From assembly GCA_963924565.1 (NCBI GenBank), contig OZ004612.1, positions 28,706,001 to 28,770,000 on the forward strand: 64,000 nt of DNA, written 5' to 3'. Every line of letters starts with the position of its first letter. Positions within the stretch are counted from its first letter, which is position 1. The notes beneath the pieces are model-generated. The model was not told the DNA's origin. It was given only the letters and a program-made list of their open reading frames with translations, and did no database searches. The translations under genes were made by a program, and so were the position numbers. This document shows positions 19,257 through 61,694 of the stretch, one piece after another. The stretch comes from Ascidiella aspersa. Lineage: Eukaryota.

Positions 19257-19334
19257 GAGTAAACGTAAAACCCGCAACTAAATAAAACTACGAATTGATT
19301 AACTTTAGTAGATCAACAATTCCTAAAACTAAAC

Positions 19335-30954: not shown

Positions 30955-33900
30955 ATGGCAAAGGCATTGTGGATTGGTTTGTTGATGACAGGTAAGGATG
31001 TACGCTTTAAGACTTAAAATAAACTTGTACAGTACACGGGTGCGGGTTTATTTTTGAAGTGTACGTTTGTTTGTTGAAATTTACTTATTAAATCTTTTTC
31101 ACGAAAAGAGAAAGGAGTAGAGCCGGCCAAGGATTTAAGTTTTGTGGCATTTCTTATTGCGTAGCAACATGACGTCATCAACAATAGAAACAAGATTCAA
31201 ACTGTTAAAACGTGTTGCAGTGGTCTCGGGCTGTATTCGCCAAAAGCAAAAATATGAGTTTTATATATATGCAATGAAAGATACACACACAGTTATGTGT
31301 TCAAAAACTGTGATTTAGCCCTTCGGAAGCTGCTTTTTGACCAACTATTAAATCTTATGTATCATTAGTACACCGATAGCCATCGCAGACTCACGAAACC
31401 TGTCGATCAAAATATAACAAGCAAGGCAGGCTAGGAAAACAACTAGCCTGCAGTGAGGTTCCAACTCACGATTTAAATATGCATATTTATTTGTTAACAG
31501 TTCAGGTGTTTTTTTGGTCAAGAAAACATATATGTCGATTAAAAAAGTTTCTTGATAGTTATGCCTGTATGACGGAACCCAAAGTACAGAATTTGTATCA
31601 GGAAGTCTCAAAATAGGCGCGTGAATAGCTGAAAATTACCGTACAGAAAACAACGCAAAAAAAAGTGATACTGAAAGTGCGAAAATGTATCGGGTAAATG
31701 TAAGTGAGGCAGATATGTGCCCACGAACACGCCCGAAAAGTAGCCACAAAACTAATTCTCATATCATGTGGAAGTTAAAATGCAATGAATATGTCTTAGT
31801 AACAGAAAACTTTCAGCTAATAATACCGCAAATTAGTTAGTCATTTGTTAGTAAACTTGATAGTTTTGGAGGATTCACATTAAAAACTTCTAAGAGATAT
31901 AAACGACGGTCCGCGTCAGCTGACGTTTATCAAACCCTTAACCGTGCTATGTACCTTAACCGTTAAAATCATTGCGAATTCTTGTATTTCCTGTTAGGTG
32001 GATTTTTGCTCGTTCGAGGTTCGCCCCTTTGCGAAAAGATGGGAACAGATAGAACTGGGTTGATCCACTTTGACAGCCGTTTGAACAACGGCACCAATGA
32101 GAGCATGTCGTGCCAGTGGAGCCTCAACACAAATACGAGCCAATTCGTGCTCTCTTTGAAGCTGATAGATCTGCGAACTTCTGGTCGAAACTTATCCTTC
32201 GTAACTCCCGACGGTAAGCGTTGTATTATTGTTTTTGTTAATATTTCTGTGGCAAGCAAAGTGGCAAAACTGCACAGTTTCGCTTTAGTAATTCGTTGTA
32301 AGCATATAGCTGTTTTCAACGTATATTTAACGAATTTTTTTGGCTGCCTTAAAGTCGATATGTGCCCACAAAAAGCCTCCAATAACGTTATTTTTAGTCA
32401 GCACTTCGATACAATAAGAAGCTTCAAATCATATAATTCCTGTCCACATAGCTCACCAGCAAAGTAAAGTTAAAATAATATACAAATTTCTGCGTTTTAT
32501 ATAGTAGGCTATAGTTAAGTTGCTATAGCCTACTACTACGAAACAAACATTGGCAAAATTAGAATCATTTATATTTTTGATGTAAAATGGATAATTAACG
32601 TGGACGAATAAATATACGGGTCTCTGTGATATTTACCTATTTAATCCGATACCAGTTATTTTGACCAAAAAAACAACAACAGTAGTTTACAGGTATTTTT
32701 TATATTCTTAGGTGATTAATGTATTGAGGTTTAGCTATCTCTATTGTGTACTATTTTGCGATTAATTTACTTTGTAAGGTTACAATTGCTGCCCTAGAAC
32801 GCAAACCATGGCCCTTACCACCCTCGATACCGCCGATACCACAGTATCGGACGAGTATCGATATTATCACGTGGCATCGGCATTGGCTCTGCCCCGATAT
32901 CATCGGACATCTATCTCAGTAACCCTAACATTGTAACCCTACCAAAACCTTGTTTTAGGAACGGTTGTTAAATCGGATGGAGGCGGCAGTCCGTCAGCCT
33001 CCAACGAACAATGGTGCGGACTTTACGTGAAGAAAAACGACGGAAACGAAACTACCTGTGGATCTTCGGTCGAGTATCCCGACATTTGCGCCAACTCCAT
33101 AACCAACATCAGCCAAACCTGGCCTCCTATCATTACCATTAAAGCGCAAGGAAACGTGAGCACAGTTGACACCACAGCTGGCCAAAACGACACCGGTTAC
33201 CCCGTGACTATCGTTCTGTACACATTCTTTATGTGTCCAGGCAACAAGGTAACCCCCAACAAGGTATCCCCCAACATAACGATGTTAAGTACAACTACGC
33301 AGACCAGTACAACTACACCACTCAGTTCGACTACTGCTGCAACTACAACTACTACAGGTATGACCACAACAACAACAAAGAATAAAGCGACTGAGCCGGG
33401 TAACACGTATTACAGAAGCGCAATAAAAATTGATTGAATGCCGAATTGCTTTTGGCAATCTATTTTTAAAAAATATGCGAATCGTTTTCTAGCAGGATTC
33501 AGTTTTATAGAAAGGGGGAATTTGTTTAAAAGACTCGCTATGGACGAATGTGCTTTATCAAATTAGTGAAATTCTTCGTTAGTTTAGGGTTTATGTTCCC
33601 TATCGTGTTATATATTCTTTTTTTTACTTATACTGCAACTGGTATATCAATAGGTATTTATTACCAATAGAAATGATACATGGGGTCGCTAAACAAGCTA
33701 TATGGTAGAATAGAAGCCATAATTATAACACTATCGTACTATACTTTTCAGTTACATCAGCACCTACGACCCTCGCCGTTTTTCTGCTAGCTGCGTCATT
33801 GGCGTTTGCGGTTTGCTTTGGATTGTGCAGCTGCACGTTTGTGTTCCTCTTCACTAAATCCAGGTACGGTTGCCAATAAATAAAGACAGGTTAAAAAGTG

Positions 33901-36900
33901 TCGGTGCCAGGTGGACCTCAAGTGCTTACACACTTTTTTCTATCAAAACGATACAGATGTTCATGTTTTTGTATCCAGTCGGTGGTATCTCAATAAATGT
34001 TCTTGAAAACCCCAGCCTACGTTGATTTAAAGTAAATTGCCTTAGTTCAATTCTTTAATATAACAATCTGATACGAGCCTTGACGGCCATTTCGAGTAAG
34101 ACATTTTACTTGAAAAAAAAATCCAAAAGCTACATGTAAGTGTTTTTCAAAACGCGTCATATCTTGATCCTAAAATGAATAAAGAGTTATGGAAAACTTT
34201 CAAAGTTCTACCTACTTCTGTATGGGCTTTGATATTTATTTTAGGTCCAAATACAATATTCTGCTATTATCTTAAGAATTATTCAAAACATTCACAAAAT
34301 GCAGTACTTCTGTATGGGCCGTGATATTTATTCTACGTCAAAATACAACAATCAGCCAATCTGCTTCAAATATCATTTTTTCTCCTTTACAAGAATGATT
34401 TTTTTTTTTTCAGTTTAAACCGGTTACATTTGATAACGGAATTTATCATAAAAATTCTCAAATTTATTCCAGATACCTGAAACGATCGCAAAATAGTAAC
34501 CAGAACACCACAGAGGCACCAATCGAAACTACAGGAAATCGGTCCAATCAAGAAAACAGCGCACCTAAGGTTTCAACTGCAAAGAAACGTGCTTTAACTC
34601 CACTAAGGTTTGTGTTAAATTAGTTTGAATAGTGTTTGTCTTTTCCACTTGACTTGTGCGAAAGTTGCATTGCTGTATATGTTGGTTGTAGGTTAGGTAT
34701 ATTTTTGAAAGTTTTAGCCGGACAATGTGCGTTTTAATTGATTAGGAGTTTGTGTGTTTGCATTTACTATAGTTAAAATGAAGGTGAAGTATAGTTTGTT
34801 CGGTAAATTCTTGCCACTTTGGCGTTAACGTGTTATAGTAAAACCTAACCTGACTTTATACACACCGTTTATTGTTTCTAACCTATTTCAATAAAATTAG
34901 TTAGGACGATTATAAATGTTTTCAAGCAGCGTCAGGCAACTCTTCTGTAAATTTAGACGACAACATGTATTTTGGTATTTGTGAAATTGCGGAGGCAACA
35001 TTTTGAACAAGTTTCTTCTGGTAAACTAAAACTTAAAAGAAATGTTTCGGTAATTCATTTAATTAAAAAAATCAATCCTACTAGAATTGTGCTACCCCTT
35101 GAAAATATTTTGTACGTTCACCAGACAAATATTTAGATATTTCCGGGTGTTTGTTTTTCCTCTAATCCTTTGTGCTTCAGATCATTAAAGTGGAACCAAA
35201 ACAAGAAGAACCGTAGTGACGTCACAAAAGCAACAATCGAACACAGCGGTAATCCCCTAAGTGCAGACAACAAAGGAAAAGTTGTAACCGGAAAGTCCGC
35301 TATAAAACCGCTGAGGTGCGTGTTACAGTTCTTGACGTGATTTATAGTCACCTCAATTAAATTAGCCCAGAGCTCCCCAAACGGTGGTTCGTAACCATAT
35401 ACAAGGGCAGGCTGGCAGAATCTTGCCAGGCTTCTGGTGACAAGCAATTTTGGTCTAAATTATCCTAAACTTGAATGATGTGTTCGCCTAACCCTAGAAG
35501 GAATGTATCAACTTTGGCAGGTTTTGGCGATAAACAAGGCTATTAACAAGTAAACAGGATAACAAAACGTTGCGCCAAATGCGCAAAATTTTTTGTGACA
35601 TCAAGTAATTGACAAATACATTTAAAGGGACATGCGAAGGTACAACCTGGGGCCTGGAACTGCACATGTCTGCTTTTCTTACTCCAACACTGTTACATTG
35701 AAAAGCTGTTTTTTCATGCGGAAACGTGCAGCTTAAAACCAAATTAAAAAGCGCGAAAAACGTATTCTTCGGAGAAATCTTCCATTTATATTCCTCTAAA
35801 TAATGATATTTAAAATACAAATTGTCACAGTCACAGTGCAACATGACACATAGTATGCATAATATATTACCTTTGGGATAGATAGATTTGTTTAAAACAA
35901 AGACATTAAACCTAGCAAAACAAGGTTAAAGGTCGCGCAAAGCGCGTAAAATTTTTGCGATAATTAAAACAAGCAAAAATATACTTCAGGCCTTAGGTGG
36001 AGAAGCATATCCTTGTACATCCTTAATATGCCGATGCGAATGTTACACCTGTTTAGCAGGAAATGGAGAATATTTCATATAATGGAGAATTCAACTCAAT
36101 ATAGAAATACTTGCCAATCAAAGCAAAATTGCAAAAACACAACGTGCTTCTACAGCAACTTTTTTTTAAATGGCACAACAAAATTAATTTCTGCCAATTG
36201 TGTGTAGGGGGTTGCAAGTTTTAGTGGACGCGAGTAGATCCACGTTAACTTTTTTAAGTGATGAGACCTCTTATCATTTTCGATATAGAAATATCAAACT
36301 TATACAGAACACAATTCACAACTGAGTCGCACAATACATCAACAATTGCGAAAAGCTTTTAAATAATAAAAGAGGTAGCATACTAGCAAAATTAGAAAGC
36401 CCTGAATTAAACAAGCCCTTCATTAAGTCAACATTTTCTTCGCTAACACAACTCGCCACATATGATTGCCACAGTGAAGTAAACACTTTAGTTTTCTAAA
36501 AGTTACTTCATCATTTCTGCTTTTTTTCTCCCGTATTTATTTTTTGGAGAAAGGTCGCTATTTGTGAGGAAGAATTAAATATAAAAATAAACTTTTATTT
36601 ATTTTCTGGGGATGTACTGCAAGCTATAAAAAAGTGAGAACCACTGGTAATAACTTTCCCAAAATACTATTAAGGGTGCCGCAAACCATTTATTTGTTTC
36701 TGTATAGTGTACCGCAAGCGAAAAAGGTTAGGAACCACTGTTTTAAACACCTGAATCACCCTATTCTTTTATTTTTCACCGCCAGGACAAATAAGGTGGA
36801 ATACGTGAACAGCGGTTTCCTTAAAAAGACCTTCGGAATCCACGGAAAGCCACAAAACCGAAACGAAAACACCAGTCAAAGTAACGCGAAAACCGGGAAG

Positions 36901-37101
36901 AAAATCGCCTTGAAACCGGGAGGAAATGTGCCAGGGATGTCTATATACGATGACCCAGACGCGAATCACGGCTATGTGCAAATGGCATCTCGTCCAGGTC
37001 CCAGTTCTAAGCCTCTACAGGTCGATGAAGCTGGCTACTTAGTTGTCAACGGGTCGCCAGCCAAGCCAGAATATATCAGCTTTGCGCAAATCAAGCAGTA
37101 A
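30955..37101 (+). CDS. Receptor R1: signal peptide, CUB-like Cys domain, Thr-rich stalk, TM, long tyrosine-motif tail (463 aa)
   Basis: Exons 30955-30991, 31998-32213, 32959-33399, 33752-33863, 34473-34607, 35181-35315, 36786-37101 total 1392 nt in frame. Signal MAKALWIGLLMTGGFLLVRG; TM LAVFLLAASLAFAVCFGLCSCTFVFLF; tail motifs EYVN, IYDDP, GYVQM, GYLVV, EYISF. Confidence 0.85.
31281..31471 (-). mobile_element. tRNA-derived repeat, partial, in R1 intron 1
   Basis: TAGCCTGCAGTGAGGTTCCAACTCACGA, with left terminus TATGTGTTCAAAAACTGTGATTTAGCCCTTCGGAAGCTGCTTT. Confidence 0.65.
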
Positions 37102-39180: not shown

Positions 39181-39579
39181 CAGTGATTTTCAACCTTTTT
39201 TAGTGCCAGAGCCGCATTTCGAACCTAAGGTTTGCAAGGAGCCGCATAAAAAACAACAGTAGGCATATAATTAAAAAACATTATGAAATAAACAAGAAAA
39301 CAACAAAAATATATTACGCCAGCCTAGGCTAACAAATTAACACTGTTAAAATAGCTATATATTATTGCCATAGCTTGTCGAGCAGGAAGTAACCCGGTAA
39401 CATTATTACGTCGTACCCGGGAGTAACATCAGTACTTCTCGTCATCCTTGATGATGCAATTTATTAATTCTTGATTTATCTTACTGCCTTTGTTGCAATT
39501 CTGCTACTACTAACTAATTTTTCATCCGTTAGTGAGGGCCGCAAAATTTACAGTTAAGAGCCGCGGTTGAGAATCACTG
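39181..39579. mobile_element. hAT-like MITE ending 44 bp upstream of the R2 ATG
   Basis: TIR CAGTGATTTTCAACC / GGTTGAGAATCACTG with internal GAGCCGC motifs. The TSD is not conserved. Confidence 0.7.
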
Positions 39580-39622
39580 TTCTAGAGACTGGGGGTTACT
39601 TAAACGCAGTTTACAACTCACA

Positions 39623-42600
39623 ATGTTTTTCCAGCTATTTGCAAGGACGTTGTGGATACTAATTTGTGGTGAGTACATTTAATATGAAGAGGCAGAGATA
39701 ACATGGCATGAATCTAGTCAAACCTAGTTACATAGAAAGCGGCGTAAACACATGCGTGGTCTCCAGTTTTCTGTTTTTAATGCAGAACTTCCAGTGTCGG
39801 CATCTCTGTCGTGGTCCAGAATTTCTTTGTATTTGCTTATATCAATCATGATACAATGCATTCTGATGATGGCAAACTATTAGTTTATTAAAAGCTGTAA
39901 TTGTTTCTGTGTACATTCGTTGCGGTAAAATACTGAGTTAAACGAAGCTAACAATGAGCGTGTTTTATTGTAATGTTGTAGTAATCAACGCCTTATGGTC
40001 GACCACTATAGTTTAAGAACAAAAATAAAACTTTTCTTTATGACCTAGTTTAGCGTCATCGGTACAGTGGCAAACTGTGAGTTATTATTGGCAATATTTT
40101 ACCATGATTTTTCCTGTTAGGCATGACATCAATGGAAGTTCTTGCTGGGTGTCCGACAGCAACCAAGAACAGAACATTTGGATTCGTATTGTATTATTTT
40201 GGAGGTACTTCTTCGACTAACCAGGAGACATGTGACTGGGAATTCAAAACCACAAGAAGCGACGTCGTATTTTCCATGCAACTTAGTTACTACTACGGGG
40301 ATGCTGTTGTCCATACATTTGCAGCACCAGACGGTTAGTTTGCTATATGCAAAACGGAACGTAAACGAATTATGGCCGGTTCGCCGGATCCCCCCCAAAA
40401 CACGTTATTTTTTCACCGGTGTATGTCGAAAAAATGAAACGTATCAGAAAATTCAAACTGATGTTGTAGTTAGTTGCGTGTTATTTTTCTTCGTAGAGCC
40501 ATATAGTCGACGTTTGTAGAGCCATACGATTGTTTAGCTCCCCGCAAATGCTTTATCGCACGGGCAAATGTATTCAACGAAAGAGCCATTTGCAGAAAAT
40601 ACAAGCACCAGAGAGAGCTTCGAAATTATTTCAATAAAAAACGGTAAATAATGTTAGTCACAATAATATTCACGGTAATAACAAAATAACACGCATAATA
40701 TTTATTAATTTCAGTCTTTTGTTAACTAACTCTTCGGATTCTATGTCTAGTGTTACGTCATAAACGAAATGGTGGCCTAAATAAAGAAAATAAAAAGAGA
40801 GAAACGTTCATAAACGATACACTTGGTGGCCGTAACAGTTTTTTTTTTTAATTCTACGATTCGAATGGAAGAGCCACAAAAAACATGCCCGGCGAGCCGC
40901 ACTTTGCCCACCCCTGGTTTATCACCTTCTGCCGAATGTATACATTTATAACGTGAGATTTCAGTTGCATATTTGGCATGGAGCAATAGCCTCAGATTTT
41001 CGAAACTTTTTTTTTGGCCGTCCCAATTTTACGACGTACCTCTGTGACGTGTCTTAAGAAAATTTAATGCGTTAAATGTTTCCATTTTCCGGTAAGAAAA
41101 TTATGGTAGTTGTTTTCACATATCACACAAACTTAAAATAACGCTTATTGACTTACTTTACAGGCAAGCAAATATTTTCCAAACGGTATGCGGGTTGGAG
41201 TGAAGGTTGGTGCGGAAGTTACGTCAAAAGGAACTCAGGAAACGAGACGACTTGTAAAGCTATAAAGTATCCAACTATGTGCAAAAATATAAGCACAGTG
41301 AGCTTGACTTGGCCGCCACAAATTAGGACAATGGTTACAGCGGATTACACCAACAGCTACAAGAGGATTAAAATAGTTTATGCATTTCTGGAATGTCCTA
41401 CACGTAACACCAACAGCATTACAACAGCTAAGTCGCCAACTGGTTTTGACACTCAAGGTAAATGTATTAATTAACTAATTTTTTTTTCTTTCTAAATCTA
41501 GAAACATTTGCATGTTTTTTTAACTGCTTTCTACCTTTAGACACAACAACTGTCGAAACCAACATGAAGCACAGCAGCATAAACCCGACAGACATAGGTG
41601 AGCTAACCTCGGGTGGGTAACAAAAACTGCATTTACGATAAGGCACCACTTGGTTTACACATGCTAAAATGGTTTCTATCCATTAATCACAAGCTGAATT
41701 TTTTTTTTACTAGTACGAAGGTCGAAAGTGGATCATAAGTAACTGTTGGTATGTACGTCGTTATATGGTACGGAACGCCTAGATTACAATTATACCATAG
41801 CGGGCGGAAAGTTTCACTCTCGAGAGTGCTACCAAAAATTCTTTTGGACGAAAAGTATCGCGATCCCACCGATATGACGAAATTAATATGCTCAAACAAG
41901 CAATATAGATTAAATTAAATTGTCCAAAGTATGCTTTTTCTGGTTATTAGGGTAAAATTTTCTTTAATTTTAGTTTTTTTCTTTTAGTTTAGTTAGTTAC
42001 CTACAGTTGTTAACGGATTATCATTATTTGATGAATTTGTGTTACAAGATAAAAATCGCTTGTTGGATCGCAAGTCATGGATGAAATATCCATACTTAAT
42101 TGGTATCGCATCGGCACCAATGCCACCCTAGTACCCGACGAGTACAAATACCACCATTTGGTATCGGGTATCGGCTCCGATCCAATATTATCGGACATCC
42201 CTAATAGTGCTGCTTACTTTCACACCAAATGCGACTAATTCCAAGAAAGGCGCGCCTTTCTATATCCAGACTTTTACGTGAAACTTGGAAGGCGGGGTAA
42301 CCTGTGTAAGTAATCCCGATCAAATATATACAAAAAGTCGGTAGAAATCTGTATTTATTTTTTAGACACCCCATCTACTACGAACAGCCGAAGTAACAAG
42401 GATTCGTCAGCTATAATAATCGGTACAACGCTTGGAGTTTTGATCATTTTTACTCTTGGTTTTATAGCTGTGGGAGCAGTAAAATACAAGTAGGTATAAG
42501 AGCAAAATATAAACATAGGCAAAATCAAAACATATCCTCTTATCCTCGGTCTTATAGCCATATATTTTAACAGAGTTTTGATAACGTTTGACTTACCGCG

Positions 42601-43946
42601 AAAGAAAAACTTTAGTATGTAAAAATAGGCACATGATTACTAAGGTAAAGAACTCTATAGGCCAGACACGGGTAAACTAATACGGCTCGCGACCCGCATG
42701 TGACATGTATTTTTTGGCTCATTTGGGTAAAGAGTAAAACAAAAATAAAATAAGAGAGGTGCACTAATATATATATATATATATATAAATATATTTAAAG
42801 TATGTTTCTTTTATTAATATATTTTATTGTGACACATATAGAGTATTTTCCCATGGAACCCTGTGATGTAACATTATATATAGTGTTGTTGCTTCAAAGA
42901 ACCAATTCACAACGATATTCGGTTGATGCAATGACTTTTAAGGAAGTCTTTTTTTAAATCCTTAATATTCATTCGTTGTTACTATTTTAAAATTCTACCA
43001 TAGCCTTCACAGCCCACTAAACGTGATTGAACAATTAATAACTTAAATTCACTTCAAGCGGCTGATTAATCTCATAAATTTTAGAATGCGGATTGCGTGC
43101 TAAGAAACAATTACATAAAATATTTCTGACATAGGCTTTTAAGCAATTAGGCTATAGTAGAAGAGACCGTTTCTCTCTCTTAAAACATTTTTAAAATGAC
43201 TGCCAAAACCAACGTCTCACAGTTGGTAGAATTCAACAAACTAAACCAGTGTTTCGTAACCTTTTTCAATTTAGGGCTCAACCAAAGACATTTTAAAAAG
43301 TTGCCGCGCAGAACGAAGCGAGCTCGAATTTTGTTTGAGTACACCAGTATTTCCTTAAATTGCTTGCATATTTTTTCATTACATAGGTTTGATAGTTACA
43401 TGTCTTAAGAGTACTGCGGAATCAATGAACTAAGCCGAATAGAAATGAATATATGTTTAATATATCAAAATTGTTTTTCGTTTGCCCGCGGTGCACATGA
43501 CAACATTCCATGGCGCACCGGTAATTAAGCGCTGAACTGAACTATGAGATAGCAATGTGTGTACAACGAAAGCTATCGCAGACTCACCTAATCTCTCGAG
43601 CAATGATGCGCAAATGATACATAAGCCAAAATCGTTGGGCAAAAAGAAGCTTCAGAAAGGCTAGATCACAATTGTTAACACACATATGTGTGTGCATCTT
43701 TCATTAATTGCAATGTGTGTCTCGATTAGAAATCTCCAAAAAGAGTTGTTATCGGCCCAAAGGAGACTAACAAACGACCCAGCTGGACAGCCAAGTCCGG
43801 GTGATATGCGTACAACACCATCTACTACAGGAGCACAAAGCATGGAAGCTGAGCCAAGACGAGGAATGGTCGACAACGTACTTTATGGGTCTGCAAGTGC
43901 TTCAGGCGAACAACGGACCGTGTATAACGAACTGTACAAACTATGA
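39623..43946 (+). CDS. Receptor R2: same ectodomain family; tail with DNVLY and TVYNELY (316 aa)
   Basis: Exons 39623-39668, 40121-40333, 41164-41457, 41541-41597, 42366-42489, 43730-43946 total 951 nt in frame. Signal MFFQLFARTLWILICGMTSMEVLAG; TM IIIGTTLGVLIIFTLGFIAVGAV followed by KYK. The first exon and the small stalk exon are the least certain parts. Confidence 0.85.
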
Positions 43947-48607: not shown

Positions 48608-48623
48608 CTTTAATCAAGTATAG

Positions 48624-49059: not shown

Positions 49060-49725
49060 AAGTATGGACTGTGTTCCAAAATTATGCAAACGTGACAAAA
49101 ATAACCCCCAAAACAAGTGATTTCTTGAGCCCTGATTCTTCTGGTTTACACTAAGTCATAAAGCGACGTTTCGGCAGCAGTTATCAATCCATCTATTTAT
49201 AAAAAAAATATAAGCAATATATTTTACGTGTTAAAATAATAGAGAAAAGGCACTGCAAATATTTAAAAAATATACTTCACGTCTCTTCAGTGAGGATACG
49301 TGATTTCGGTTGTTGTGGTTATAACTGGACAAATTTACCTAAAATATTTAACCGTGCCACTATACGTGATCACAGTCTGTATAAGAGATAGAACAAAAGG
49401 TAAAATCTGTTCTTACCGAAACGGTAAATGTTTCGTATATGTCAAGGCTGTATACTTCACGTCTCTTCAGTGCGGAAGGCTGTTTGCTACAACGTTGGGC
49501 AATGATTCAAGTTACAAAACATGTACTTACTCACGGTGGATGTTGTTAGTCAGCGCTTAGGGGTTTTAAACGCACACTGCGTTCGTAATTGTGCGCAAAC
49601 GCCTTCGTCACTTGAATGTCATGGTAAAATTACGACCGCACACTGACATACCTTATACTGGTTGTTAGGATTGTATTTAAAAGAGAAGGACTGCTGTTGA
49701 TGAAGATTTTCTGATAAGCTACTAA

Positions 49726-52700
49726 ATGCATTGGTTCAAGTTTCACTTTGTTTTGCTGAACTTTTTAGTGCTGAATACCGTTCTGTACCTGACGTGCGCT
49801 GTCGGCTGCCAGGTTGAATTTTCAAGTAAATCTGGAACGATTGCCTATGGAAGAAGCTTCCGCAGTTGTAAACAAAAGTGTAGCTGGATATTTTCCTACA
49901 ATAGTAGTGGAGAAGTTGCTTTTCGACTAAAGTTTCTTCTTAGTGAGGGGAATGCAAAACGAGACGAATCGGTCACTTTACCAGACGGTGAGTATTTTGG
50001 TAATTCACACTTTGACATCAGGGATTTATATAAAAATACGATTTTTTTTCAGTAAGACAGGATCAGTGCAATAGTTTCTTGGAAATATAGTGACATGTGA
50101 ATGGGGTATTCTGAAGAAAACAATATGATTTTGCGTTTGATTTATCTAAATGGATTTAAATACAGTAAGGGTTGCATTCGGGTAGAATGGAATATTTCAT
50201 AAGCTGTAAACAGCCTATATAAAAGTCTCACGTATAACTTTAATCATTGCTTCTATGATGATTCATTTGTCCATCATCATTAAACAAATCGTTTGTAGCA
50301 TCTTTTGCGATAACAATCCATATCTACCCTATACATATGCCGAAACTTGGCTGGTTTAATTCTTGGTTAGTTGCAGAAATATACAGCTATTGTTTCGGGT
50401 AGGTTCGGTTTTGCCGGAAAAAACGATCAACAGCACTTCGAAGTGGTGTGCCGTGTACGTAAAAGCACCGGGCAGTCAAAATACTTCTTGCGTTGAGAAT
50501 GTGACAATCGCCAACATATGCGACCAAGCCACAGTGCGCAGTCAACAATGGCCACCGACCATTACAACTCATGTTTGGTCTTACACAATGCAAGTGGACT
50601 ACGATTTTGTCGACTGTAAAGCTTGGACAACAACCACAACGGCCAATGAAACACATACCGCGTCAACAACAAGAACAACGAAGGTGGCGACAAATCAGAC
50701 TGTCTTATACGAAACAACAGGTGAAGTATTAATAAAAATTAACGCGGTGTAGCAATAGTAGAGCTTCCTAAACATTTTAGTCTGCAAACCCTTTTACTTT
50801 GTAATAACTATTCGCAACCCTTCGAACTATGATAACATATTATTTCATAATTTCTAGTTTCACGCGTATTTGTTGAGTTCTGTGCAACTCAGTTGTCAAT
50901 TGAGTTTTATTGGTTTAGAAATTTGCATAACGAAAATTAAAAAAAGCCCAACTCATTTATGTTTAGATGTAACATTCGTTTCTTTTGATATGAATTACTC
51001 GCAATTCATCAAGCTCATTGCGCGATCCTAGTCTAGGAAGCCCTATAGCCTGTACAATTTCGCAAGTTACATACGACGCATCAACCAGTTATTCGCGGTT
51101 CTTATGTTCACTTTGTTCTCGTTTATAGGATTCACAATGGTCGATTACGTTTGCTATAGTCGCCGATTCTCGTATAGGTTCCCATTTAAATTCTTATGCT
51201 TTTCTATAATAAATATAGACAATAGAGACTGTGACAGCGCAATTGCAATTGATATGTTTTAACAAATCCCCGTTGCAAATAAAATGTTGCGTTATGCAAG
51301 CTGCATACTATTGTTGGCTGTAGTGTTACATTTACTGTAACTGGGCTATTTGCTTAAAGCAGGACGTTTGTCTAGTCAAAAGTGATTTATAGGCACCGAA
51401 CTTTTAAAATTCCAGGGCGTTATTTTCCAGAATCTAGACAGTGCAAAATTACTTATATATAAATAAGATAAAAAATGTGAGCTCTTAGATAGCAGCTGTT
51501 TCATGTTATTACTGTAGTTTGTAGATTTTATGAACTCTTGCCTATAATTGGTAATAGTAAAATGAAATATTCTGTGTCTAACTGTCCAGCCATCCCACAA
51601 TATGTCTATATACCTACATGAAGTGATCTTTATCAATAATACTGTTTTTAACCGGTCGAGTCGAGCATTAGCACAATGATTAATCGTTTTTTTAACACCA
51701 GGATTCTTTAGCGCTGAGGTTACTACGTCAAGGAATTCCCCGAGAAACAGATCGAAAGTGGTTGCACAAGAAACCGTTGGACGAAACCTGACAGCGGTGT
51801 CTGTTGTGTTGGCTGTGCTGTTACTCATCGCACTCTTGGCCTTTTTGGCTGTTCTTTTTAAGTACAGGTACAAACCTATGTGTCGCCATAATACTTCCAT
51901 CTGGTTAACTTTGACGTAGAAATCTCATACTAATTTATGACTTGGTTACCTTGAGATAAACTGTAAGGACTGGCGATACCATTTCGGATAACTAATATGA
52001 TTGAAGATTGCTGATCTACAATTTCGTGACGAAATTTATTGACTTGATTTGTAGAATTATACGAATTAAAACTTAAAAAGCAATGCGAAAATGTGTTGTG
52101 AGTTTTCAAATCGTCCCGTATAGTTTAAATTTTCATCAAAGTTTAGTTTAAACCCGACAAACTTTGTAACAAAACTGCGTGTTTTATAGTTTTTAGATAT
52201 CTGTATTTAGAAAATATACCCTGGACCGGAAAAACTTACTTCGCGGACCTTAGTTTCCAATGATAAGAACGTTATTCGTTTTCTAACTGTATACATATCA
52301 GATGTACCACAGTAACAAACAAACTTCTAATTCCAAATGTAAAATTGTTCTTCCAGCAAAATTTGTTAAATTACTAATGTTTCGACCACCACCTATTCGG
52401 GCTTTCTAAATATCTGTATTTAGAAAATATACCCTGGACCGGAAAAACTTACTTCGCGGACCTTAGTTTCCAATGATAAGAACGTTATTCGTTTTCTAAC
52501 TGTATACATATCAGATGTACCACAGTAACAAACAAACTTCTAATTCCAAATGTAAAATTGTTCTTCCAGCAAAATTTGTTAAATTACTAATGTTTCGACC
52601 ACCACCTATTCGGGCAATCTTCTTCGGTGCAATAAAATTGCAACTCCAGGCAAAAAAGAACAATGCCTAGCAGCATCAGCTTGTAAACAATGTTTCACAG

Positions 52701-53048
52701 CAAAAACTAATTTCAGTTAGGAATAAGTTTTATCCTACATAGAAAATTATTACAACTTGTTTATTGTTTAGAACATTGCAATCAAGAATGGCGAAGAATT
52801 CTGAGAAAAGCCATGCATCAGTCTACGGAAACGACCCTTCATCCGACAACAACATGTACGCAATGGCCACGGCTCCTTCACAAGCGACTAACTCAGTAGC
52901 AAATGGGGAACGAGAAATGGTGGACAACGAACTTTACACCGCCAACGATGTGCGTGAAGAAAAACAGACTGTCTACAACGAACTTTACGCAGCCAACAAT
53001 GTTTTGGAAGAAAAACAGACTGTGTACAACGAACTATACAAAGCTTAG
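49726..53048 (+). CDS. Receptor R3: same family; tail with three NELY repeats (340 aa)
   Basis: Exons 49726-49987, 50403-50720, 51702-51867, 52772-53048 total 1023 nt in frame. Signal MHWFKFHFVLLNFLVLNTVLYLTCAVG; TM LTAVSVVLAVLLLIALLAFLAVLF followed by KYR. Confidence 0.9.
52197..52615. repeat. 206-bp tandem duplication (period 213) in R3 intron 3
   Basis: 52197-52402 is repeated, apparently identically, at 52410-52615. Confidence 0.9.
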
Positions 53049-54512
53049 TTTGCTTGTTTAAATGACATATTCTCAGAACCATAGTGTTCCGTTTAATTTT
53101 TTACCACGTGCCTAAACTATTGTGTTGGGCAAACGACAACGTCCCCAAAGGAGCCATGTGGCCACATATTATGAACTTTACTGAAGTAAACATTGGGTAG
53201 TGAAAGTATTATATCTAAACATCCTTGCAAAATAGTTTTGGTTTGGCTCCAGGAGACATTGGCGTCAGCAGCTTGTTAAAAAATATTTTTTACTTGTTTT
53301 CCTGCTCACTTGGAAATGTATTATAGGTGCAAAAAAGTTCGCCAATTTGTGGAAACAAAAATCACTTAGCGGGAGCACTGTTCAGCACAGCGCACTTGAG
53401 GTCAAAACTTGAAAAAAGAGTGTGTTATTTATTTGTCTTGCTTGTTCATATTTCACTGCTAAATATTTTCGTCCTTATTTTTCCCTTCGCAAACGATATA
53501 CAAAGCTTCCGAAATGAAATCCAGCATAATCATTTCAATACCGCCCACATAAATGGTTCCATACACCACCATTGATTTTAAAGTTTGTATAGAAAGCCAA
53601 TTAACAAATCTTTGGTTGAAATTGCGCAAATTTGTTTGAGCGCGTAATGAAATTGTGTACGTGTTTATAAAATAACGGAATAAAATGTGATAATGTGCCT
53701 ATGGTGGTCCAAAGTTTGAAACAAAATAAGATTGACTTTCATTTGATGATATATTTTGCATAATAATTACAACGTTCCAGCCGATACAAAAATCTATAAA
53801 AACTCTATATACATCGATTTTCGACTTACTGTAACTTTAACGCACTAAATCATGGTGAACTTTTGTTTTAAAGGGGTTTACCTAAATGTTGTAAACAAGT
53901 CAATTTAAAATGACTTAAATCCGAGTCAAATCATGGCAATAAAATGTACGGTCAGATCAAGTCATTTACCTAAATAAAATGTTGAATTATATATTGAAAA
54001 TGTAAACTAGTAACATCCTGAGAGATATTTTGATTAACGAATTGTAACAAACACGTAACAATTACTTAATTCGAAATCAAACTCCTTAACAAGAAAAACT
54101 GGAATAAAAAGACTAAACGAATTTTCTCAAAATTATTTTAAAGCTTTTAAGTCTAAGTAAAATTGATTGCCTCAAAATTGATTTGCGTCAAGTCAAGTCA
54201 TTAAAACGTCAGCACACAATAATATCAAACAAAGGGAACTATAAATACCGTTAACTATTTAAATCCAAGCATTGGAGAAACAAATGGAAGCCTTCTATGG
54301 ATAAGCATTAGACACATGACGTAGTTTAACAGGTTTACATGCGTGATACGTGCATAGTTGCGCGGGTCACTTTATTGTTTGTGTGTAGTAGCTATACCAG
54401 GAAATACTGTCACCAAGCGTTGTTAGCTGTAGACAATAACAAGCGGGTACAACACTGTTTGGCTGTTTTTTTTGTGGACGACTAAATTCGCCGAAGTGTG
54501 ATCAAAGCGGGA

Positions 54513-56356
54513 ATGATTGGTCTCAAGTGGAAAAACGTTTTTCTGAGCTTTCTATTACTGGAAACTGTTTATCAAAGCGTTGTCGGTTGCAAACATGAAT
54601 TCTCTAGTCGATTCGGAAAAATATCTTACAAGGCAGATTATTCATGGCAGAAATGCGACTGGAAATTTACTTACAATGGAAGCAGAAGTGATGTTGTTTT
54701 GGGAATAAAGATTAAGAACATTTGGCTACACAGTGACGAAATAATTACTTTGCCAGACGGTGAGTATGCCAATGTTTTAAATTCTTCCAGTTAATTTGTA
54801 ATCGGACTTTTAAGTTACTCATTTTTTTTTATTTAAATTCAATATTGCATATTACGTTTGCCAACTTAAACATTCGCAAAGTGTGTAAAACTAATGGTTA
54901 GTAGCAGTCCTAAAAATAAATATAGGGTCCGTGAGGTAATCATTTGTTTTAAAAAAGGGTGCTGAAATTAAAACAGGTTGTTAATCACTTGTCTTCGCGT
55001 CTTAGCTCTAAATTACTCATGCAAAAATATCTGAACATTTATTCCATTAAAACCCTAAGCAAATTCAACAAGTGTTTTTATTAAAAGGGAAAGCTATTTC
55101 AACTCGTCTCTGGATTGCTCAATATTGTGGAGTGTTTGTGAAAGAGTTTGGATTACAAGAATCGTGCAACGATGGAGTAAAGTATCCTATAATTTGTGAC
55201 AAGCCGAGCGTTTACAGCAAATCGTGGCCACCCAACATTACAACTAAACTGTATTCTCATGAAATGGAATTAGTTTACGGTTTTTTCGACTGCACAAATA
55301 TTACCACAACCACAACTACAACAACAACAACAGCAAAGGCTACAACAAGGACGTCAACGACAAAAACAGCAACTACAACAAAATCCTCCACAGCAACAAC
55401 GAGAAAAAACGATGTGGAAACGACAACAACAGCGTTTTCAATAGGTAAAAAAATTACAATATTTCTTTGTTGCTTGTACAGTAATGTTTATTTTTTTATT
55501 TCGGCTTTTTGAATGGAAAAACTAGACAAAAAACAAGCTATTTGTTACTTTAATATATTTCCAGGAGTTTTAAGCTCTGAAGTTACTAGGCCAGATACTT
55601 CCCAAAGAAACAACTTTAAGTTTGCGGCGCAAGAAGAAATTGCACGAAATATGACAGTAACAAGCGGTATATTGGCTGCATTACTGCTCATTTCTGTTTG
55701 TGCCTTGGTAGCGGCCTTCATTAAATACAGGTAAATATTTATCCAGCAGTTTTTATGAGGCATGGATAAATTAATTTCATTAAAAAAAAATTAAAAATGT
55801 TGGACACATTTTCCTCCATGGCCTCATTTATTACATAGTCTAATAGAAAATAAGGCCAAAAGAATAGTACATAAACAAATATGCTGTGTATCGTTTTGAT
55901 CTTATCCGATCTTAATCTACAAATATTGTTCAAAGAATATTTACGTAGTAAGAATATCAAATCCCATACAGAAGTAGGTATTATTTTAAATGTTTCGAAT
56001 AACTTTTTATTTATATACAACATGAACTACGTATAAGAACATGAATCAGGAGTTATTCAAAACGGTCACAATGATACCCAAATAGTCCGTCATTCCTACA
56101 AAGTGTATGGGCTTTAATATTCATACTATGTCTTACTACAACCTCCAACCATTATGCTCCAAACCTACATTTGTTTAGAAACTTGAGCAAACAACCGACA
56201 ACGAACGGAAACAACGTTAACGCAATGGTGACAGGTCCTTCGCAAGCAACTTATTCTACGGCATACGGGGAAAGGGAAATGGTCGACAACGAACTTTACG
56301 CAACAAGCAATGCTGGAGAGAAACAGACTGTTTACAACGAGCTTTACACGGCTTAG
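54513..56356 (+). CDS. Receptor R4: same family; tail with DNELY and TVYNELY (315 aa)
   Basis: Exons 54513-54759, 55088-55444, 55565-55730, 56179-56356 total 948 nt in frame. Signal MIGLKWKNVFLSFLLLETVYQSVVG; long Thr stalk; TM VTSGILAALLLISVCALVAAFI followed by KYR. Confidence 0.9.
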
Positions 56357-58057
56357 ATCGCTTGTTTTTATAACACCGATGTGGTATAGGAAAAAGAGTT
56401 ATGAACTGAACAACGCCGGCTTGTAAAAATATATGTGTCATCTTCAGAAATTTTGCGGAGTCGGAAGCTTTTTTGGTTTATGGGCGTAAAAAACATACAA
56501 AGTTTTAATTGTATTTTTAGGAATTTTTCGGCATCTAGTTAAAAAAAATCACTCAAAACGTGCTAAAAGACACCAAAGATACATATAATTTCGCGAAAAC
56601 AAATGCTATTATTCCCAGTCCAATATAGGTAAAAAATATTGTTAGGTAAGGATCCATAGCCACGTACTACTGTAGATTTATCTGCAGACCAGATTATTTT
56701 CATTAAAAGAGTCATAGATATGGAAGTCGCCTAACCTTACACAAATGGCCACAGTAATGTGTAATCTATTATGGAAACTCGATTTTCTTCCACTTTAGTT
56801 CCATTTTATGTATTTTTACTGTGATTCTCTTTTCTACGCCTTTTAAATTGTTTTTAGTTCGCAGTTATGTTGCTGTATAAATATATAAAATCATAAATAT
56901 TGAACTGTTTAAATATTGAGTTAGTGTTTTCCATATATATATATATTAGTGTTTTCCATAATAAGGTGTATTACATTGTTATCATAATCCAGGAATGTTA
57001 AAGTCCGGGACAGTAAAAAAATAAAGTCTTACACTTTTTCCGTTGGTGTGGTAAATCTAAACAAAGATCCTACCAAGGTTGCTGGTACGAAAAGCGCCTT
57101 TATGAGAGATGTCATATCAGGTCAGATAAGTTATAATATCATGTCAATGGAAAATAAATGTATTGCAAATTGCAAATAGCCGTGTAAAATTTGAATGGCT
57201 TTATATGATTTCACCAGCCGCAAATACATTCCAATCAAAAAGCAAATGGAAATCATAAGTGCAAACGATACTTTCAATCCTATTGTTTCGCATTGCATAC
57301 CAAGTGCGGTATTGCAATTGCGGGTAGACAATAAGGAAGTAAGTGTAGTTGGCAGAACTATATTTCGCAATCAATTAAGGACTTTGTTGTGGCTGATATT
57401 GAGCCACATGACGATGACTTCAAGATCTGACACATCTGACAATTCAAAACGTCAGATAGATTAGCATAATGGTTACCGTGACGTTTGGCCTGTGTGTCAA
57501 CGAAATATGCGTGGGCGATTTTAAGTGGCTATACGTATTAAACCGCTGGCTATACATAGATGTGCCACTGCCACATTGGTATTAGACGGGACTACAGCAA
57601 AAATACAGAAATCAGAATAACATGAACGTCGAATCAAAACCAAATCCTAAATAAGAAAACAACGGAAAGGCAAGAAGGACCGTGGTTCTTGAAGTAAAAT
57701 AGCCCGTCATTCCGACAAACATGCAAGGTTAATCAGCCAATAAAATTGGATTAGCTATTTTCTTTCTTTTCAAAATAAAGCACATAAAGACAATATTTAC
57801 TACAACAACTAATGCAAAAGTAACAGCACGAAAACTAATAAACGTTTTGACAACCAGTATTTATAAATCGAAAAAATCGAAAACAACTTTAAATTGTCCT
57901 GGAAGAAGTACAGCACAAAGCTTAACTAAATAACAAAAACCGTTGGGTCGTTGCAGGAAACAAATAAGGAATGTGAAGTTATTTATCTGTTAAGAGGATG
58001 CTTACAACAAAATAAAGGGAAACAACCAGAAAACCATTATATAACAGTACTTGTGGC

Positions 58058-58558
58058 CAGGGCTGGGGAGCCACCGTAAAATAGCATTAGCTCCGGCTCC
58101 AGCTCCGGAGCCATCAGGCAATTATTAAATGGCTCCGGCTCCAGCTCCGGAGTAGTAAAACTCATATCCTTTGGCTCCGGCTCCAGCTCCGGAGCCATCA
58201 AACACACACCCAATGACTCCGGCTCCAGCTCCGGTGCCACCAGTCACTTATTCAATGGCAAGTTTTAAAAATTGCTTTTGTCTCACTAACGTTGGAGATG
58301 GAACAAAATATAATTTCTTAGCTTTAACACCACAAATTGAAAAATGGCTCCAGCTACACAAAAATAATAAAAAGGGCTCCAGCTCCGGCTCCAGCTCCGG
58401 CTCCAGCTCCACAAAAATAATAAAAATGGCTCCGGCTCCGGCTCCAGCTCCACAAAAATAATAACAATGGCTCCGGCTCCGGCTCCGGCTCCGGCTCCAG
58501 AGAAAATGCTTAGCTCCGGGCTCCGGGCTCCAGCTCCGGCTCCGGCTCCCCAGCCCTG
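58058..58558. mobile_element. Young hAT-type MITE filled with (GGCTCC/AGCTCC)n
   Basis: Perfect 15-bp TIR CAGGGCTGGGGAGCC and perfect 8-bp TSD CTTGTGGC (58050-58057, 58559-58566). Confidence 0.92.
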
Positions 58559-59655
58559 CTTGTGGCAGGACTTGGTAAAACGCGGCGGAAGGCACAGATT
58601 TCATATTCGAATTATTTTTACAAATTTGGATTGGTTTAATCACACAAATTATTTTCTTTGCAGATTCTTATTTCGTCAAAATTGACATAAGCTAATCTTC
58701 CATTATAATTGCTTATCGCAAATTGCCGTGATTATGAGCAATGTGTATATCAGCTAACTTAACAAATTAAGATCACCATCGCTAGAAAGTTATTGAAATA
58801 GGCCAAAATATTTTTAAAGGGTGCTCAGGTTTTGTACGAAAGCTCAGGTTTTGTACGACTAACGACTGTCGTCTTATTGAAAAATATGACCTATTCTACC
58901 AAGTGCAGTTACGCGTCTGCCACGCTTTCTATTCAAAATATTTGGATATGGTTATTTCCATAATTAAAGTAACATTACTTGATTTCAGCGTGAAAGGATT
59001 TGGTAAACTATTTAAAAAAATTGCCAATGAAAAAATATATTTGCAATGAAAACGCGGAAGAGTTGTGCCCAATAATACTGTAGGTTTTTAATCGACTAAG
59101 ACTTCTATATCGATTACAAAACTGGGAATAGAAAAAAATGCATTTGGTTTTCAAACGATAGTTTATTTCTTCTTATTGTATGGGATATGCATATGTTTTG
59201 GGATTTTATGAAGTCGTTAAAGGTACAATTCGTCAGATAGAGCGACATATACGCTACACGGAAGAGACTGACTGGCTTTAGCCTTGCAAAGTACGTGAAT
59301 CTGCAAACGAAAATGAGTCAACCTATTTAATCGTTAGTAGCAGTGTATAATTGGAAACGTCATATTGTTTTACCAATATCCTGAAACCACAATCGCCGGA
59401 GCAGCTACAATGGCGTCAGTTTGAAAAAGAAAAAGCCGAACGTAGTAAGAATATCAAAGCCTACACAGAAGTAATGTGCTACCTGCCTCTACTTCTATGT
59501 GGGCTTTGATATTCTTAGTACGTCTTACTACAATCTCCAGCTATTATGCTCCAAAAAGCCTACACTGTTTTGTAGTTGTACTTGTTAACGGTTTTGTAGA
59601 TTTACTTGTTTAGCTTTGTAGGATTTTTTTTGTGTAACTAAAGTGCTAATTCCTG

Positions 59656-61694
59656 ATGAGTTTGCTCAACCTGAAAACCGTTTTGTTGAATCTTGTGTTG
59701 CTGGACACAGCTTATCACCAGGCATGTGCCGCTGCCAGCCGCAAAACTCTTTCCAGTAGATTTGGACTGATTACATACAGTACATATAGGAATGGTTGGA
59801 AGACGTGCGATTGGATATTTAATTACAACGACAGCAGTAACGATGTTGTATTGGGAATAAAGTTTCAGAAGAGCTCAAGGCTTTACAACACCCAATCAGT
59901 TACACTCCCAGACGGTAAGGATGATGCTTATTGGTATATACCGCTACAGTATGGCTTTTAATTTTCATGCATTTTTTTCGTTTCAAATATAAACCGTAAA
60001 GCATACTCGTTCGAGCCGTTGAAACATCAACCGTTTATTAGAAAAAATGATTATATATACCAAATTAAAGTGAATTTATTTGTATTTATCACAGGTACGA
60101 TTCTAACTCGTAACACCCTCAGTTCAAGATTTCCTTGGTGTGAAGCGTACGTGAAAAAATCGGGTTCATGCCTTAAGAACGTAACCTACCCAAGCATTTG
60201 CGACAAAGCAGCGGTTTCCATAGAAACTTGGCCGCCAAAGATTACTACTAAAATGTACTACTACTCAACTAGGCGGCACCACTACTCAATGGAAGTAGCA
60301 TACAGCTTTTTTGACTGCTCGAAAAGCACCACTGCAACAACCACAACAACAAGAAAACTAACAACGTCTACCACCTTGAAGTCAACACCTACAGAGAATG
60401 TCAAGAAACCAACAGGTTGGAAAAATACGTAACGGCGTTATTTAAAAGAATGTTGCAGACAGGGATGTCCGATAGTATCGGATCGGACACGATGTCCATG
60501 CACATAGTGATATCGGTACCCGTCCGATATTAGTGTGGTATCGGTGCCGATCCGATACCAAATTACCATAGAAATTTAAACCATGATTTGCGAGGTAACG
60601 AAGTTATTTCTACATTTAGAGGTAAATTTATAAAAAAATGGTATGCAAACGACTAAACTTCTTAACGCTTAACCACATTTTCACCCAATAACCTAAAAAA
60701 ATCGATTGAATGTTTTAATTTTATTTATTAGAAAACAACTCCAAAAATGCACAAGAATCAATTGGGCGAAGTATGTCAGTGGCGACTGGTGTTCTTGCTA
60801 CACTACTGCTCATCGCTGTTGGTGCTTCTGTAGTGGTGGCCGTCAAGTACAGGTACAAACCGTATTCCCGACCAGGCAATCCTGAACGGACCTGGTTCAT
60901 TGACTCTAAATCTGTCGTAATTCAGATAGTAATTAATAAAAATTGGGTTAGATCGATTTTGGGGGGCTACGGACGTGGCGCACTTGGTGTAAAGTATTGC
61001 GGAGACCAAACACGATTGGGTGACCGATAATTATGATTTTGTAATATTTACGAATAACTTTTTAATGAATAGTGTAACAACTCTTAACTCCACAACTTAC
61101 GATTGTTTTGCTGTGTTGTTTTTTGGTACGGAATTAAGGGGGTTCGTCAGATTCAGATTCAGATTCAATTTATTTTTGTGCATGTTTGCAAACATCGAAA
61201 AAAACAAAATAACATAAATAATAACACAAGGACAGCGAAAGGACCATTCGGTCATCGAGTCGAGCTGCCCCTCAAAAATAAATAAATTTAGTGGCAATAT
61301 TGAAAGTTACAATCATTGGAAACAAAAAGTGCGTAGATAAAAAGTATGTAGATTTTAACGGTTTTATATAAATTTTTGAAATAAGAAATGGATACGAAAA
61401 AGCAATGTAAAACTAGCAAAAAACGATAAGGTCAGAAGGTACTATACAACGGTTACGTACTGCAGGATTTATTATCGTCAAGAGATGGAAACTAAAATTA
61501 AAACTATACAATTAATTATATTCTTCAGAAAATTGAAGCTAAGAAATCCCGCAAACAACCAACCAGCAGCCAACGGAAACGGCCGTTCAGTCGACTACAA
61601 TGTGTACACAATGGCCACAGCTCCTTCGCAATCGAATAATCCAGCAGCAAATGGGCAACGAGAAATGGTAGACAACGAACTGTACACAATGTAG
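59656..61694 (+). CDS. Receptor R5: same family; tail with VYTM and a single DNELYTM* (288 aa)
   Basis: Exons 59656-59914, 60095-60415, 60732-60852, 61529-61694 total 867 nt in frame. Signal MSLLNLKTVLLNLVLLDTAYHQACAA; TM VATGVLATLLLIAVGASVVVAV followed by KYR. Confidence 0.9.
61147..61400 (-). mobile_element. 3' end of a CR1/L2-type LINE or its SINE partner
   Basis: The minus strand reads a stem-loop GGGGCAGC...GCTGTCCT, then AATAAA and a (TGAATC)n microsatellite tail. The upstream boundary is approximate. Confidence 0.55.

Follow-up and report, generated by a model that had tools for sequence, protein, structure and literature searches.

Candidate recognition receptors with a plausibly CUB-like head and NxxY-type tail motifs: a clustered gene family in the ascidian Ascidiella aspersa

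What kind of protein is encoded by the five neighbouring genes between positions 30955 and 61694 of a 64,000-nucleotide stretch of the Ascidiella aspersa genome (GenBank assembly GCA_963924565.1, contig OZ004612.1, positions 28,706,001 to 28,770,000; the whole stretch is called the window), and what could a cell use it for? In tunicates, which form the sister group of the vertebrates, the known cell-surface recognition receptors are few. With at least 23 members, the family to which the five genes belong is clustered and lineage-restricted; it has no Pfam model, name or literature and keeps a tyrosine motif in two distant ascidians. We consider it fairly probable that the products are ligand-binding surface recognition receptors with a CUB-like head, members of an ascidian multigene family, that act via adaptors, via internalisation or via both. 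The variable loops of the head would bind an extracellular ligand, either protein or glycan, the Thr-rich and presumably O-glycosylated stalk would raise the head above the cell coat, and a short tail, which follows a single transmembrane (TM) helix and has no enzymatic domains, would couple binding to the cell via sites of the type hydrophobic-x-N-x-L-Y ([ML]VDN[EV]LY, TVYNELY). It is for these sites, which look like docking signals for PTB domains or internalisation signals of the NPxY type and overlap with YxxL sites that could bind SH2 domains or AP-2, that the proteins are best read as cell-surface recognition receptors; they may signal through adaptors, enter the cell with their ligand, or do both. 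The family presents a candidate set for ligand recognition in immunity, engulfment, adhesion or gamete interaction. If its function were housekeeping endocytosis or adhesion, it would be an ordinary taxon-specific gene family.

Exon boundaries were set from the DNA, which has 36 % GC in this region and contains neither gaps nor N, and the models were then checked exon by exon. Five genes on the plus strand follow one shared exon plan, from a first ATG at 30955 to a last stop at 61694; both positions are identical to those in an earlier note made from the DNA letters, and its claim of five same-strand genes with open spliced frames was confirmed. All introns are of the GT-AG type (19 of 19), and the terminal stop is the sole stop in each model. 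Coding lengths of 1080 (or 1122), 951, 1023, 948 and 867 nt, each a multiple of three, yield proteins of 359 (or 373), 316, 340, 315 and 288 amino acids (aa) for genes 1 to 5; gene 1 has two possible stalk donors, 33357 and 33399, each in phase 1. In each gene a phase-1 intron interrupts the Gly codon of a PDG motif (donor CCN GAC G/GT, acceptor ag/G), and the TM exon closes in phase 2 at K-S-R, K-Y-K or K-Y-R, two features that had been noticed before and hold for all five genes. The stalk is flanked by phase-1 introns throughout. Thr-rich stalks, TM segments and Tyr-rich tails are apparent on direct reading. An additional 5' exon divides the signal peptide of genes 1 and 2, the one of gene 2 being a prediction, as is an additional 57-nt stalk exon in the same gene. 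The exons are listed below; X3 denotes a sequencing run whose contigs are described thereafter.

30955..30991 (+): gene 1 exon 0, with the ATG and the signal peptide's first half (MAKALWIGLLMT + G), donor in phase 1
31998..32213 (+): gene 1 exon A, remainder of the signal peptide and N-terminal half of the Cys domain (C..G..CxW..PDG)
32959..33399 (+): gene 1 exon B, C-terminal half of the domain (WCGLYVK..WPPII..YTFFMC) and Thr-rich stalk
33752..33863 (+): gene 1 TM exon, K-S-R end, phase 2
36786..37101 (+): gene 1 tail exon, deviant (YVQM, YLVV, YISF), without the VDNxLY motif
39623..39668 (+): gene 2 candidate exon 0 (MFFQLFARTLWILIC + G, donor GTGAGT), predicted, resembles gene 1 exon 0
40121..40333 (+): gene 2 exon A
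41164..41457 (+): gene 2 exon B and short stalk
41541..41597 (+): gene 2 stalk mini-exon of 57 nt, predicted, phase 1 to phase 1
42366..42489 (+): gene 2 TM exon, K-Y-K end, phase 2
43730..43946 (+): gene 2 tail exon, MVDNVLY and TVYNELY
49726..49987 (+): gene 3 exon 1, signal peptide and N-terminal half of the domain
50403..50720 (+): gene 3 exon B and Thr-rich stalk
51702..51867 (+): gene 3 juxtamembrane/TM exon, K-Y-R end, phase 2
52772..53048 (+): gene 3 tail exon, MVDNELY and two TVYNELY
54513..54759 (+): gene 4 exon 1, covered by an X3 contig
55088..55444 (+): gene 4 exon B and Thr-rich stalk, X3 contig begins at 55087
55565..55730 (+): gene 4 TM exon, K-Y-R end, phase 2
56179..56356 (+): gene 4 tail exon, MVDNELY and TVYNELY, X3 contigs extend past it
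59656..59914 (+): gene 5 exon 1, X3 contigs
60095..60415 (+): gene 5 exon B and stalk, joined to exon 1 by X3 record 23
60732..60852 (+): gene 5 TM exon, K-Y-R end, phase 2
61529..61694 (+): gene 5 tail exon, MVDNELY forming the C-terminus

The last intron of gene 3 holds a 213-bp unit in tandem duplicate, 99 % identical (52190-52615).

Are these genes expressed? Four runs were aligned to positions 54450-60440, comprising gene 4 and, of gene 5, exon 1 and exon B; RNA evidence is thus limited to genes 4 and 5, and the models of genes 1-3 rest on sequence. Runs X1 and X2 covered the region everywhere, in a DNA-like manner. Run X3 (83 Mb, library type not on record) covered exons only. Its contigs comprise exon 1 and exon B of gene 4 and a 3' stretch that passes the tail exon and reaches at least 56716, the part beyond the tail exon being probably the 3' untranslated region. 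One contig aligns from 55087, adjoining the predicted gene 4 acceptor, with 15 unaligned letters preceding. Exon 1 and exon B of gene 5 were found as well, and X3 record 23 runs continuously from 59913 to 60094, the predicted 180-nt PDG intron being removed. Because the X3 contigs are restricted to exons and record 23 lacks this intron, transcription is established for genes 4 and 5, and the models are confirmed at one intron. In the declared RNA run X4, of which 6 % was read, reads fell on three high-copy repeats only and none on the exons of genes 4 and 5, which counts against an expressed receptor. Confirmation of the models by RNA, as envisaged when the cluster was first described, was therefore obtained in X3 for exons of genes 4 and 5 and for the gene 5 PDG intron, and not in the part of X4 that was read.

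The extent of the family was determined with a profile of the five exon-B pieces, searched against the same 308.6-Mb assembly. The window copies scored with E values of 1e-25 to 5e-33, far too low for chance matches. Of the 22 places found, five are the window genes, two follow closely downstream, and eight lie at C6 29.79-29.85 Mb on the minus strand; others are at C6 24.27, 28.49 and 30.36 Mb, at C7 31.04 Mb and on C1. One further copy at C6 28.786 Mb was recognised by eye, giving at least 23. The copies lie mostly in clusters on one chromosome, and at the loci that were fetched the exon order A, B, TM, tail is repeated. Against 1.84 billion representative proteins, the exon-B profile had 11 matches only (best E value 7e-9). 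Two of them are named, LOC143461689 (286 aa) and LOC143462528 (346 aa) of Clavelina lepadiformis, both "uncharacterized", while UniRef names one Clavelina twin "CUB domain-containing protein"; the remainder are unnamed exon-like open reading frames (ORFs) on metagenome or SRA contigs. The full-length Clavelina proteins have the architecture of the window genes. At least five same-strand paralogues with a matching exon plan occupy 22 kb of Clavelina CAUIVY010000128.1 (5984278-6006101), carrying LPAG instead of PDG and CxF instead of CxW, with tails that end in [LM]V[DN]NVLYQ. A count of only two members in Clavelina was wrong, the locus carrying at least 5 tandem paralogues. As evidenced by this tandem locus and by a best cross-species orthologous pair of about 50 % identity, the family is clustered in two ascidians that are far apart. 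A profile search had been proposed in the earlier note, and it extended the five genes to at least 23 copies and to the Clavelina cluster.

A tree of the 70-residue exon-B domain, poorly resolved, grouped genes 3, 4, 5 and 6; gene 2 with the copies at C6 24.27 and C7 31.04 Mb; and, across species, the copy at C6 28.49 Mb with Clavelina P0001 and an unnamed contig. When Clavelina P0001 or a 33-row alignment served as query, word-index protein searches returned self matches and fragments only, Thr-rich words probably swamping them, and literature searches for a described tunicate family combining CUB, TM and tyrosine features returned nothing. With reasonable though not high confidence we take the genes as members of an undescribed multigene family of type I membrane glycoproteins, restricted to ascidians as far as searched. 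The earlier note had called the receptors an undescribed type I family, and the absence of a Pfam match, the 11 protein matches with "uncharacterized" as description of the named ones, and the empty literature searches agree with it. Two genes of the second cluster, with exon B at 29787704 and 29794634 (C6:29784000-29803999), lie 6.9 kb apart and do not differ over exons A and B; the pair arose by a very recent duplication or is a duplication in the assembly.

Indications of what the proteins do come from the tail. Every tyrosine with its context was listed in 11 tails of this genome and two Clavelina tails, and three more Clavelina tails were read. The most conserved element, [ML]VDN[EV]LY, lies at the C-terminus or close to it; of the 11 tails of this genome 10 carry it, namely those of genes 2-7, of the C7 copy and of three genes in cluster 2. 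Its counterparts in Clavelina tails are LIDNVLY, LVDNVLY and MVNNVLY, and hydrophobic-x-N-x-x-Y occurs in four Clavelina paralogues. A second unit, TVYNELY, is again of the NxxY form, with an overlapping YNEL that reads as YxxL/YxxPhi and as TxYxxL, similar to the immunoreceptor tyrosine-based switch motif (ITSM); TVYNEL is present in genes 2, 3, 4 and 7. The gene 3 tail contains a 51-nt (17-codon) tyrosine-motif unit repeated 2.4 times in tandem (52924-53044). N[VLM]Y[SAT]M[AD] is the third recurrent site. Strict immunoreceptor tyrosine-based inhibitory motifs (ITIM, [SIVL]xYxx[ILV]) and activation motifs (ITAM, YxxL/I-x6-8-YxxL/I) were absent from the tails listed. The only matches are the TVYNEL sites, with a sequence that has T at -2 and is ITSM-like but has L at +3, and the two YNEL sites of gene 3 are 13 residues apart, not in ITAM spacing. 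Tails of the ITIM or ITAM type were thus not found; the conserved element is hydrophobic-x-N-x-L-Y instead.

Counted from its Tyr as position 0, [ML]VDN[EV]LY has Asn at -3 and a hydrophobic residue at -5 and thereby takes the form of the NxxY class. Known examples of this class are FDNPVY of LDLR, RET Y1062, whose site we take to be IENKLY, and integrin beta tails; Draper, CED-1 and MEGF10 join NPxY with YxxL, and the overlap of NxxY and YxxL in TVYNELY resembles these engulfment receptors. NPXY or NXXY motifs have been described as required for PTB recognition (PMC4985636), and RET Y1062 has been cited as a consensus PTB site (PMC2150770). Two observations weigh against such a role in the family: the classical NPxY proline at -2 is replaced by E or V in every copy, and gene 1 as well as the subfamily of C6 28.49 Mb and Clavelina P0001 are without [ML]VDN[EV]LY. 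Judged by its sequence, the tail appears to fit the NxxY-type PTB-docking and endocytic class better than ITIM or ITAM. The motif is kept between paralogues with saturated synonymous divergence and between species and is therefore the strongest hint of function, which may be adaptor docking, internalisation or both. Binding partners of the tail motif (PTB, SH2, AP-2) are directly identifiable.

Is the head a CUB domain? It is a single six-cysteine domain, about 130-155 aa long, whose coding sequence is divided between two exons. In the five-gene alignment, with pairwise identities of 26-50 %, G, CxW and PD are invariant in exon A, and C, VK, C, C, WPPxI and YxFxxC in exon B. The earlier note had described kept framework residues with divergent loops between them; the alignments bear this out with the exception of gene 4, where YC replaces WC. 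Two Clavelina homologues were folded with AlphaFold from a 33-row alignment that included the window exon-B pieces. Both models present an all-beta jelly-roll ectodomain with predicted local distance difference test values of 55-89 and 75-90. VIA-align 2 retrieved many CUB domains (Z 5.4-6.9, root mean square deviation (rmsd) 2.7-4, 90-105 residues), the top one being TSG-6 CUB_C (Z 6.9, rmsd 2.7, 93 residues), followed by those of Gpr126, spermadhesin, meteorin, C1s, MASP, enteropeptidase, TMPRSS6, Neto2, neuropilin and PCPE-1; no Z reached 8. An ESM Atlas feature search placed CUB clusters at 23 of 30 named neighbours (score 0.91). CUB is the best-represented family among both the structural matches and the language-model neighbours. 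Shared with CUB domains (PF00431; spermadhesins, C1r/C1s/MASP, TSG-6, neuropilin a1/a2) are the predicted beta-sandwich of about 110-140 aa and a D-G after the fourth or fifth strand. The first half, C...G.I/V.Y...CxW.F...SDVVF...PDG, resembles the first half of the CUB consensus. In 13 exon-A sequences the first cysteine is present in 90 % or more and C-x-W is invariant; as a putative disulfide pair they have a spacing of 20-28, near that of the first CUB disulfide pair (C...C-x-W, about 22-27 apart).

Several results weigh against CUB. Pfam searches gave no family match for any of the ten large window exons or for the full-length Clavelina homologues, with CUB missing up to E 1 for the exons and up to E 10 for the homologues, while the Pfam CUB model as a control had 149 canonical CUB exon matches in the same genome. 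The predicted folds are those of Clavelina homologues, not of the window proteins. Foldseek with both models found only generic jelly rolls, none below E 0.01, and in VIA-align 2 GOLD, cupin, Ena pilus and viral jelly rolls tie with CUB, all below Z 8. An exon-A profile had only a chance match to an FHA protein (E 0.45) among PDB sequences, and its alignment by hhalign to one canonical CUB exon, with CxW in the expected register, reached a probability of 19 %, which is not significant. The second CUB disulfide pair, arranged around the central DG (C-x-y-D...f-C-G), has no counterpart, as no cysteine precedes PDG where CUB domains have C3, and the second half holds four cysteines in a non-CUB pattern (WC...C...C...C with WPPxI). 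Canonical CUB exons of this genome often break in mid-domain as well, near model position 60-65. In the one canonical CUB gene that was read, however, this intron is in phase 0 and 4 codons earlier than PDG, and the PDG intron was dropped as a typical mid-CUB intron.

On balance, the models moderately favour a jelly-roll sandwich that would represent a very divergent CUB domain. "CUB-like" is a plausible term for the head; membership in PF00431 is not demonstrable. Of the CUB-like domain proposed originally, the part resting on fold and language-model searches stands, both being in agreement, while a Pfam CUB assignment and a separation from GOLD and cupin do not. The companion claim of a different fold is not upheld, for a CUB-like head would have a fold that is already known. 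A very divergent branch of CUB-like folds would justify a new family model. CDCP1/Trask and DCBLD1/2 (ESDN) of vertebrates are single-pass proteins with CUB-type domains and Src-phosphorylated tails. In common with the family are type I topology, the CUB-like nature of the ectodomain and tails that act only through tyrosine motifs. They differ in that they carry three CUB-like domains or CUB, LCCL and discoidin domains, their long tails use other motifs (YxxP in DCBLD), their genes are single-copy, and they lack a mucin stalk. Similarity in sequence between the family and CDCP1/DCBLD was not found here.

Canonical CUB genes also occur near family members. In the second cluster (C6:29814000-29823999, minus strand) tandem canonical CUB genes (PF00431, 37 bits) with a period of about 5.8 kb are interleaved with the divergent family, each consisting of a CUB exon and, behind it, a T/N-rich (ATNAT)n stalk exon. 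Neither a TM exon nor a tail exon of these genes was found, and they were dropped as a bridging form; they appear to be secreted and CUB-mucin-like. Clusters of canonical CUB exons at C6 28.42-28.47 and 24.17-24.22 Mb lie 20-100 kb from the family members at 28.49 and 24.27 Mb, possibly by chance.

Could the genes instead serve immunity or allorecognition? Haemocyte or epithelial receptors under pathogen or self/non-self pressure, signalling through ITIM-, ITSM- or ITAM-like motifs, would form a tunicate-specific immunoreceptor-type family, in which a divergent CUB-like head replaces Ig, lectin or CCP domains in the recognition of microbes or non-self, tandem duplication diversifies the set, and MVDNELY (PTB-type) and TVYNEL (ITSM-like) constitute a tail code not recognised before. 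We regard this explanation as unlikely, yet as the strongest competitor. It agrees with tandem clusters in both ascidians, with a restriction to ascidians as far as searched, with variable loops upon a fixed framework and with the fit of TVYNEL to TxYxxL in genes 2, 3, 4 and 7. CD300/KIR, Ciona vCRL1 and Botryllus fester likewise combine tandem clusters, single-pass topology, tyrosine tails and lineage-specific expansion; their ectodomains differ, that of the family being neither Ig nor CCP, and the strict ITIM and ITAM spacing is absent from the family. One subfamily has a cross-species orthologue, which speaks against this explanation, and the term CUB domain does not occur in a review of tunicate immunity (PMC5465252).

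Rates of evolution bear on the same question. Nei-Gojobori estimates were made for exon A and exon B separately. Among genes 1-5 the synonymous divergence (dS) was above 1.5 or not computable and the nonsynonymous divergence (dN) 0.36-0.67, with a ratio dN/dS (omega) of about 0.2-0.3 where defined; for gene 2 and its C6 24.27 Mb relative omega was 0.21-0.26. Because dS is saturated and dN/dS is about 0.2-0.3, the window paralogues are, judged by these estimates, old duplicates under moderate constraint, which does not favour an immune function. The description of the genes as fast-diverging is accordingly not borne out, and of the contrast drawn with the neighbouring SLC6 transporter genes there remains that the SLC6 copies are near-identical in the compared exons; the difference in divergence is due to duplication age. 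Fast divergence or polymorphism may apply to young copies. The youngest pair consists of gene 5 and gene 6, the next gene downstream (C6:28770001-28780000, about 2050-4200 of that piece), with an identical tail and an ectodomain omega near 1 (0.74 in exon A and 1.05-2.3 in exon B, from few sites), as an immune receptor might show. The TM-tail half and the 3' flank of the two genes are 98 % identical, the 5' half (exons A and B) 87 %, which indicates that gene 6 is a mosaic duplicate of gene 5, probably by gene conversion or a younger partial duplication. In gene 6, CGC (Arg) stands in place of the cysteine of CxW, and the splice donor at PDG is GC; for this reason relaxation explains its omega as well as selection does, and gene 6 may be decaying.

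Extreme polymorphism of the ectodomain, a mark of allorecognition loci such as Botryllus fuhc/fester and Hydractinia Alr, was not seen in the small sample of three runs, covering genes 4 and 5. X1 and X2 contigs differ from the window by 0.6-2 % in the region of genes 4 and 5, exons to the same degree as flanks, whereas one X3 contig departs from exon B of gene 5 at 8 of 149 positions (5 %), a point in favour of immune diversification. In these three runs and two genes the differences between individuals look like background. Recognition receptors acting via adaptors or internalisation are preferred to immunoreceptors.

Ascidians possess fast-evolving, clustered genes for self-sterility and sperm-egg binding, and gamete or egg-coat recognition proteins were considered as another explanation. 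The resemblance is to a general pattern only, that of clustered, lineage-expanded single-pass glycoproteins, and spermadhesins, which are single CUB domains, were among the structural matches. A conserved cytoplasmic docking motif would be unnecessary for pure adhesion, and we know of no resemblance to ascidian fertilisation proteins, so this role seems quite improbable. Slightly less probable still is a role as auxiliary subunit of a channel or transporter, comparable to that of the single-pass CUB proteins NETO, SOL-1 and LEV-10, with the neighbouring SLC6 carriers as possible partners: the Neto2 CUB was among the fold matches and three SLC6 genes lie directly upstream, but adjacency alone is weak evidence, other family copies are located elsewhere in the genome, and to our knowledge NETO, SOL-1 and LEV-10 have neither a mucin stalk nor repeated tyrosine motifs. 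Decaying duplicates or chance ORFs, to which the missing X4 reads on genes 4 and 5 and the defects of gene 6 might point, are highly improbable in view of five intact multi-exon frames with 19 canonical introns, a dN/dS well under 1 between old paralogues, motifs kept across species and the spliced contigs in X3, and for genes 4 and 5 this explanation is already contradicted.

The remainder of the window contains further features.

2932-3090, 8326-14733 and 19299-23842 (+): three tandem copies of an SLC6 gene (Na+/Cl- neurotransmitter-type transporter) with near-identical exons
3999-4067 (+) and 63080-63153 (-): two tRNA matches in Rfam, the second just at the gathering score
11488-11564 (-): tRNA-Ala GGC according to ARAGORN, within a repeat-like ORF
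55850-56163, 58057-58560 and 59450-59560: three very high-copy repeats, with a word depth of 1e4-4e5 in X1 and X2, also present in RNA reads

Since Rfam and ARAGORN disagree, the tRNA matches may be tRNA-derived short interspersed nuclear elements. The repeat at 58057-58560 holds GCTCCNGCTCC minisatellites, which read as (AP)n ORFs, and the repeat at 55850-56163 ends 15 nt ahead of the acceptor of the gene 4 tail exon.

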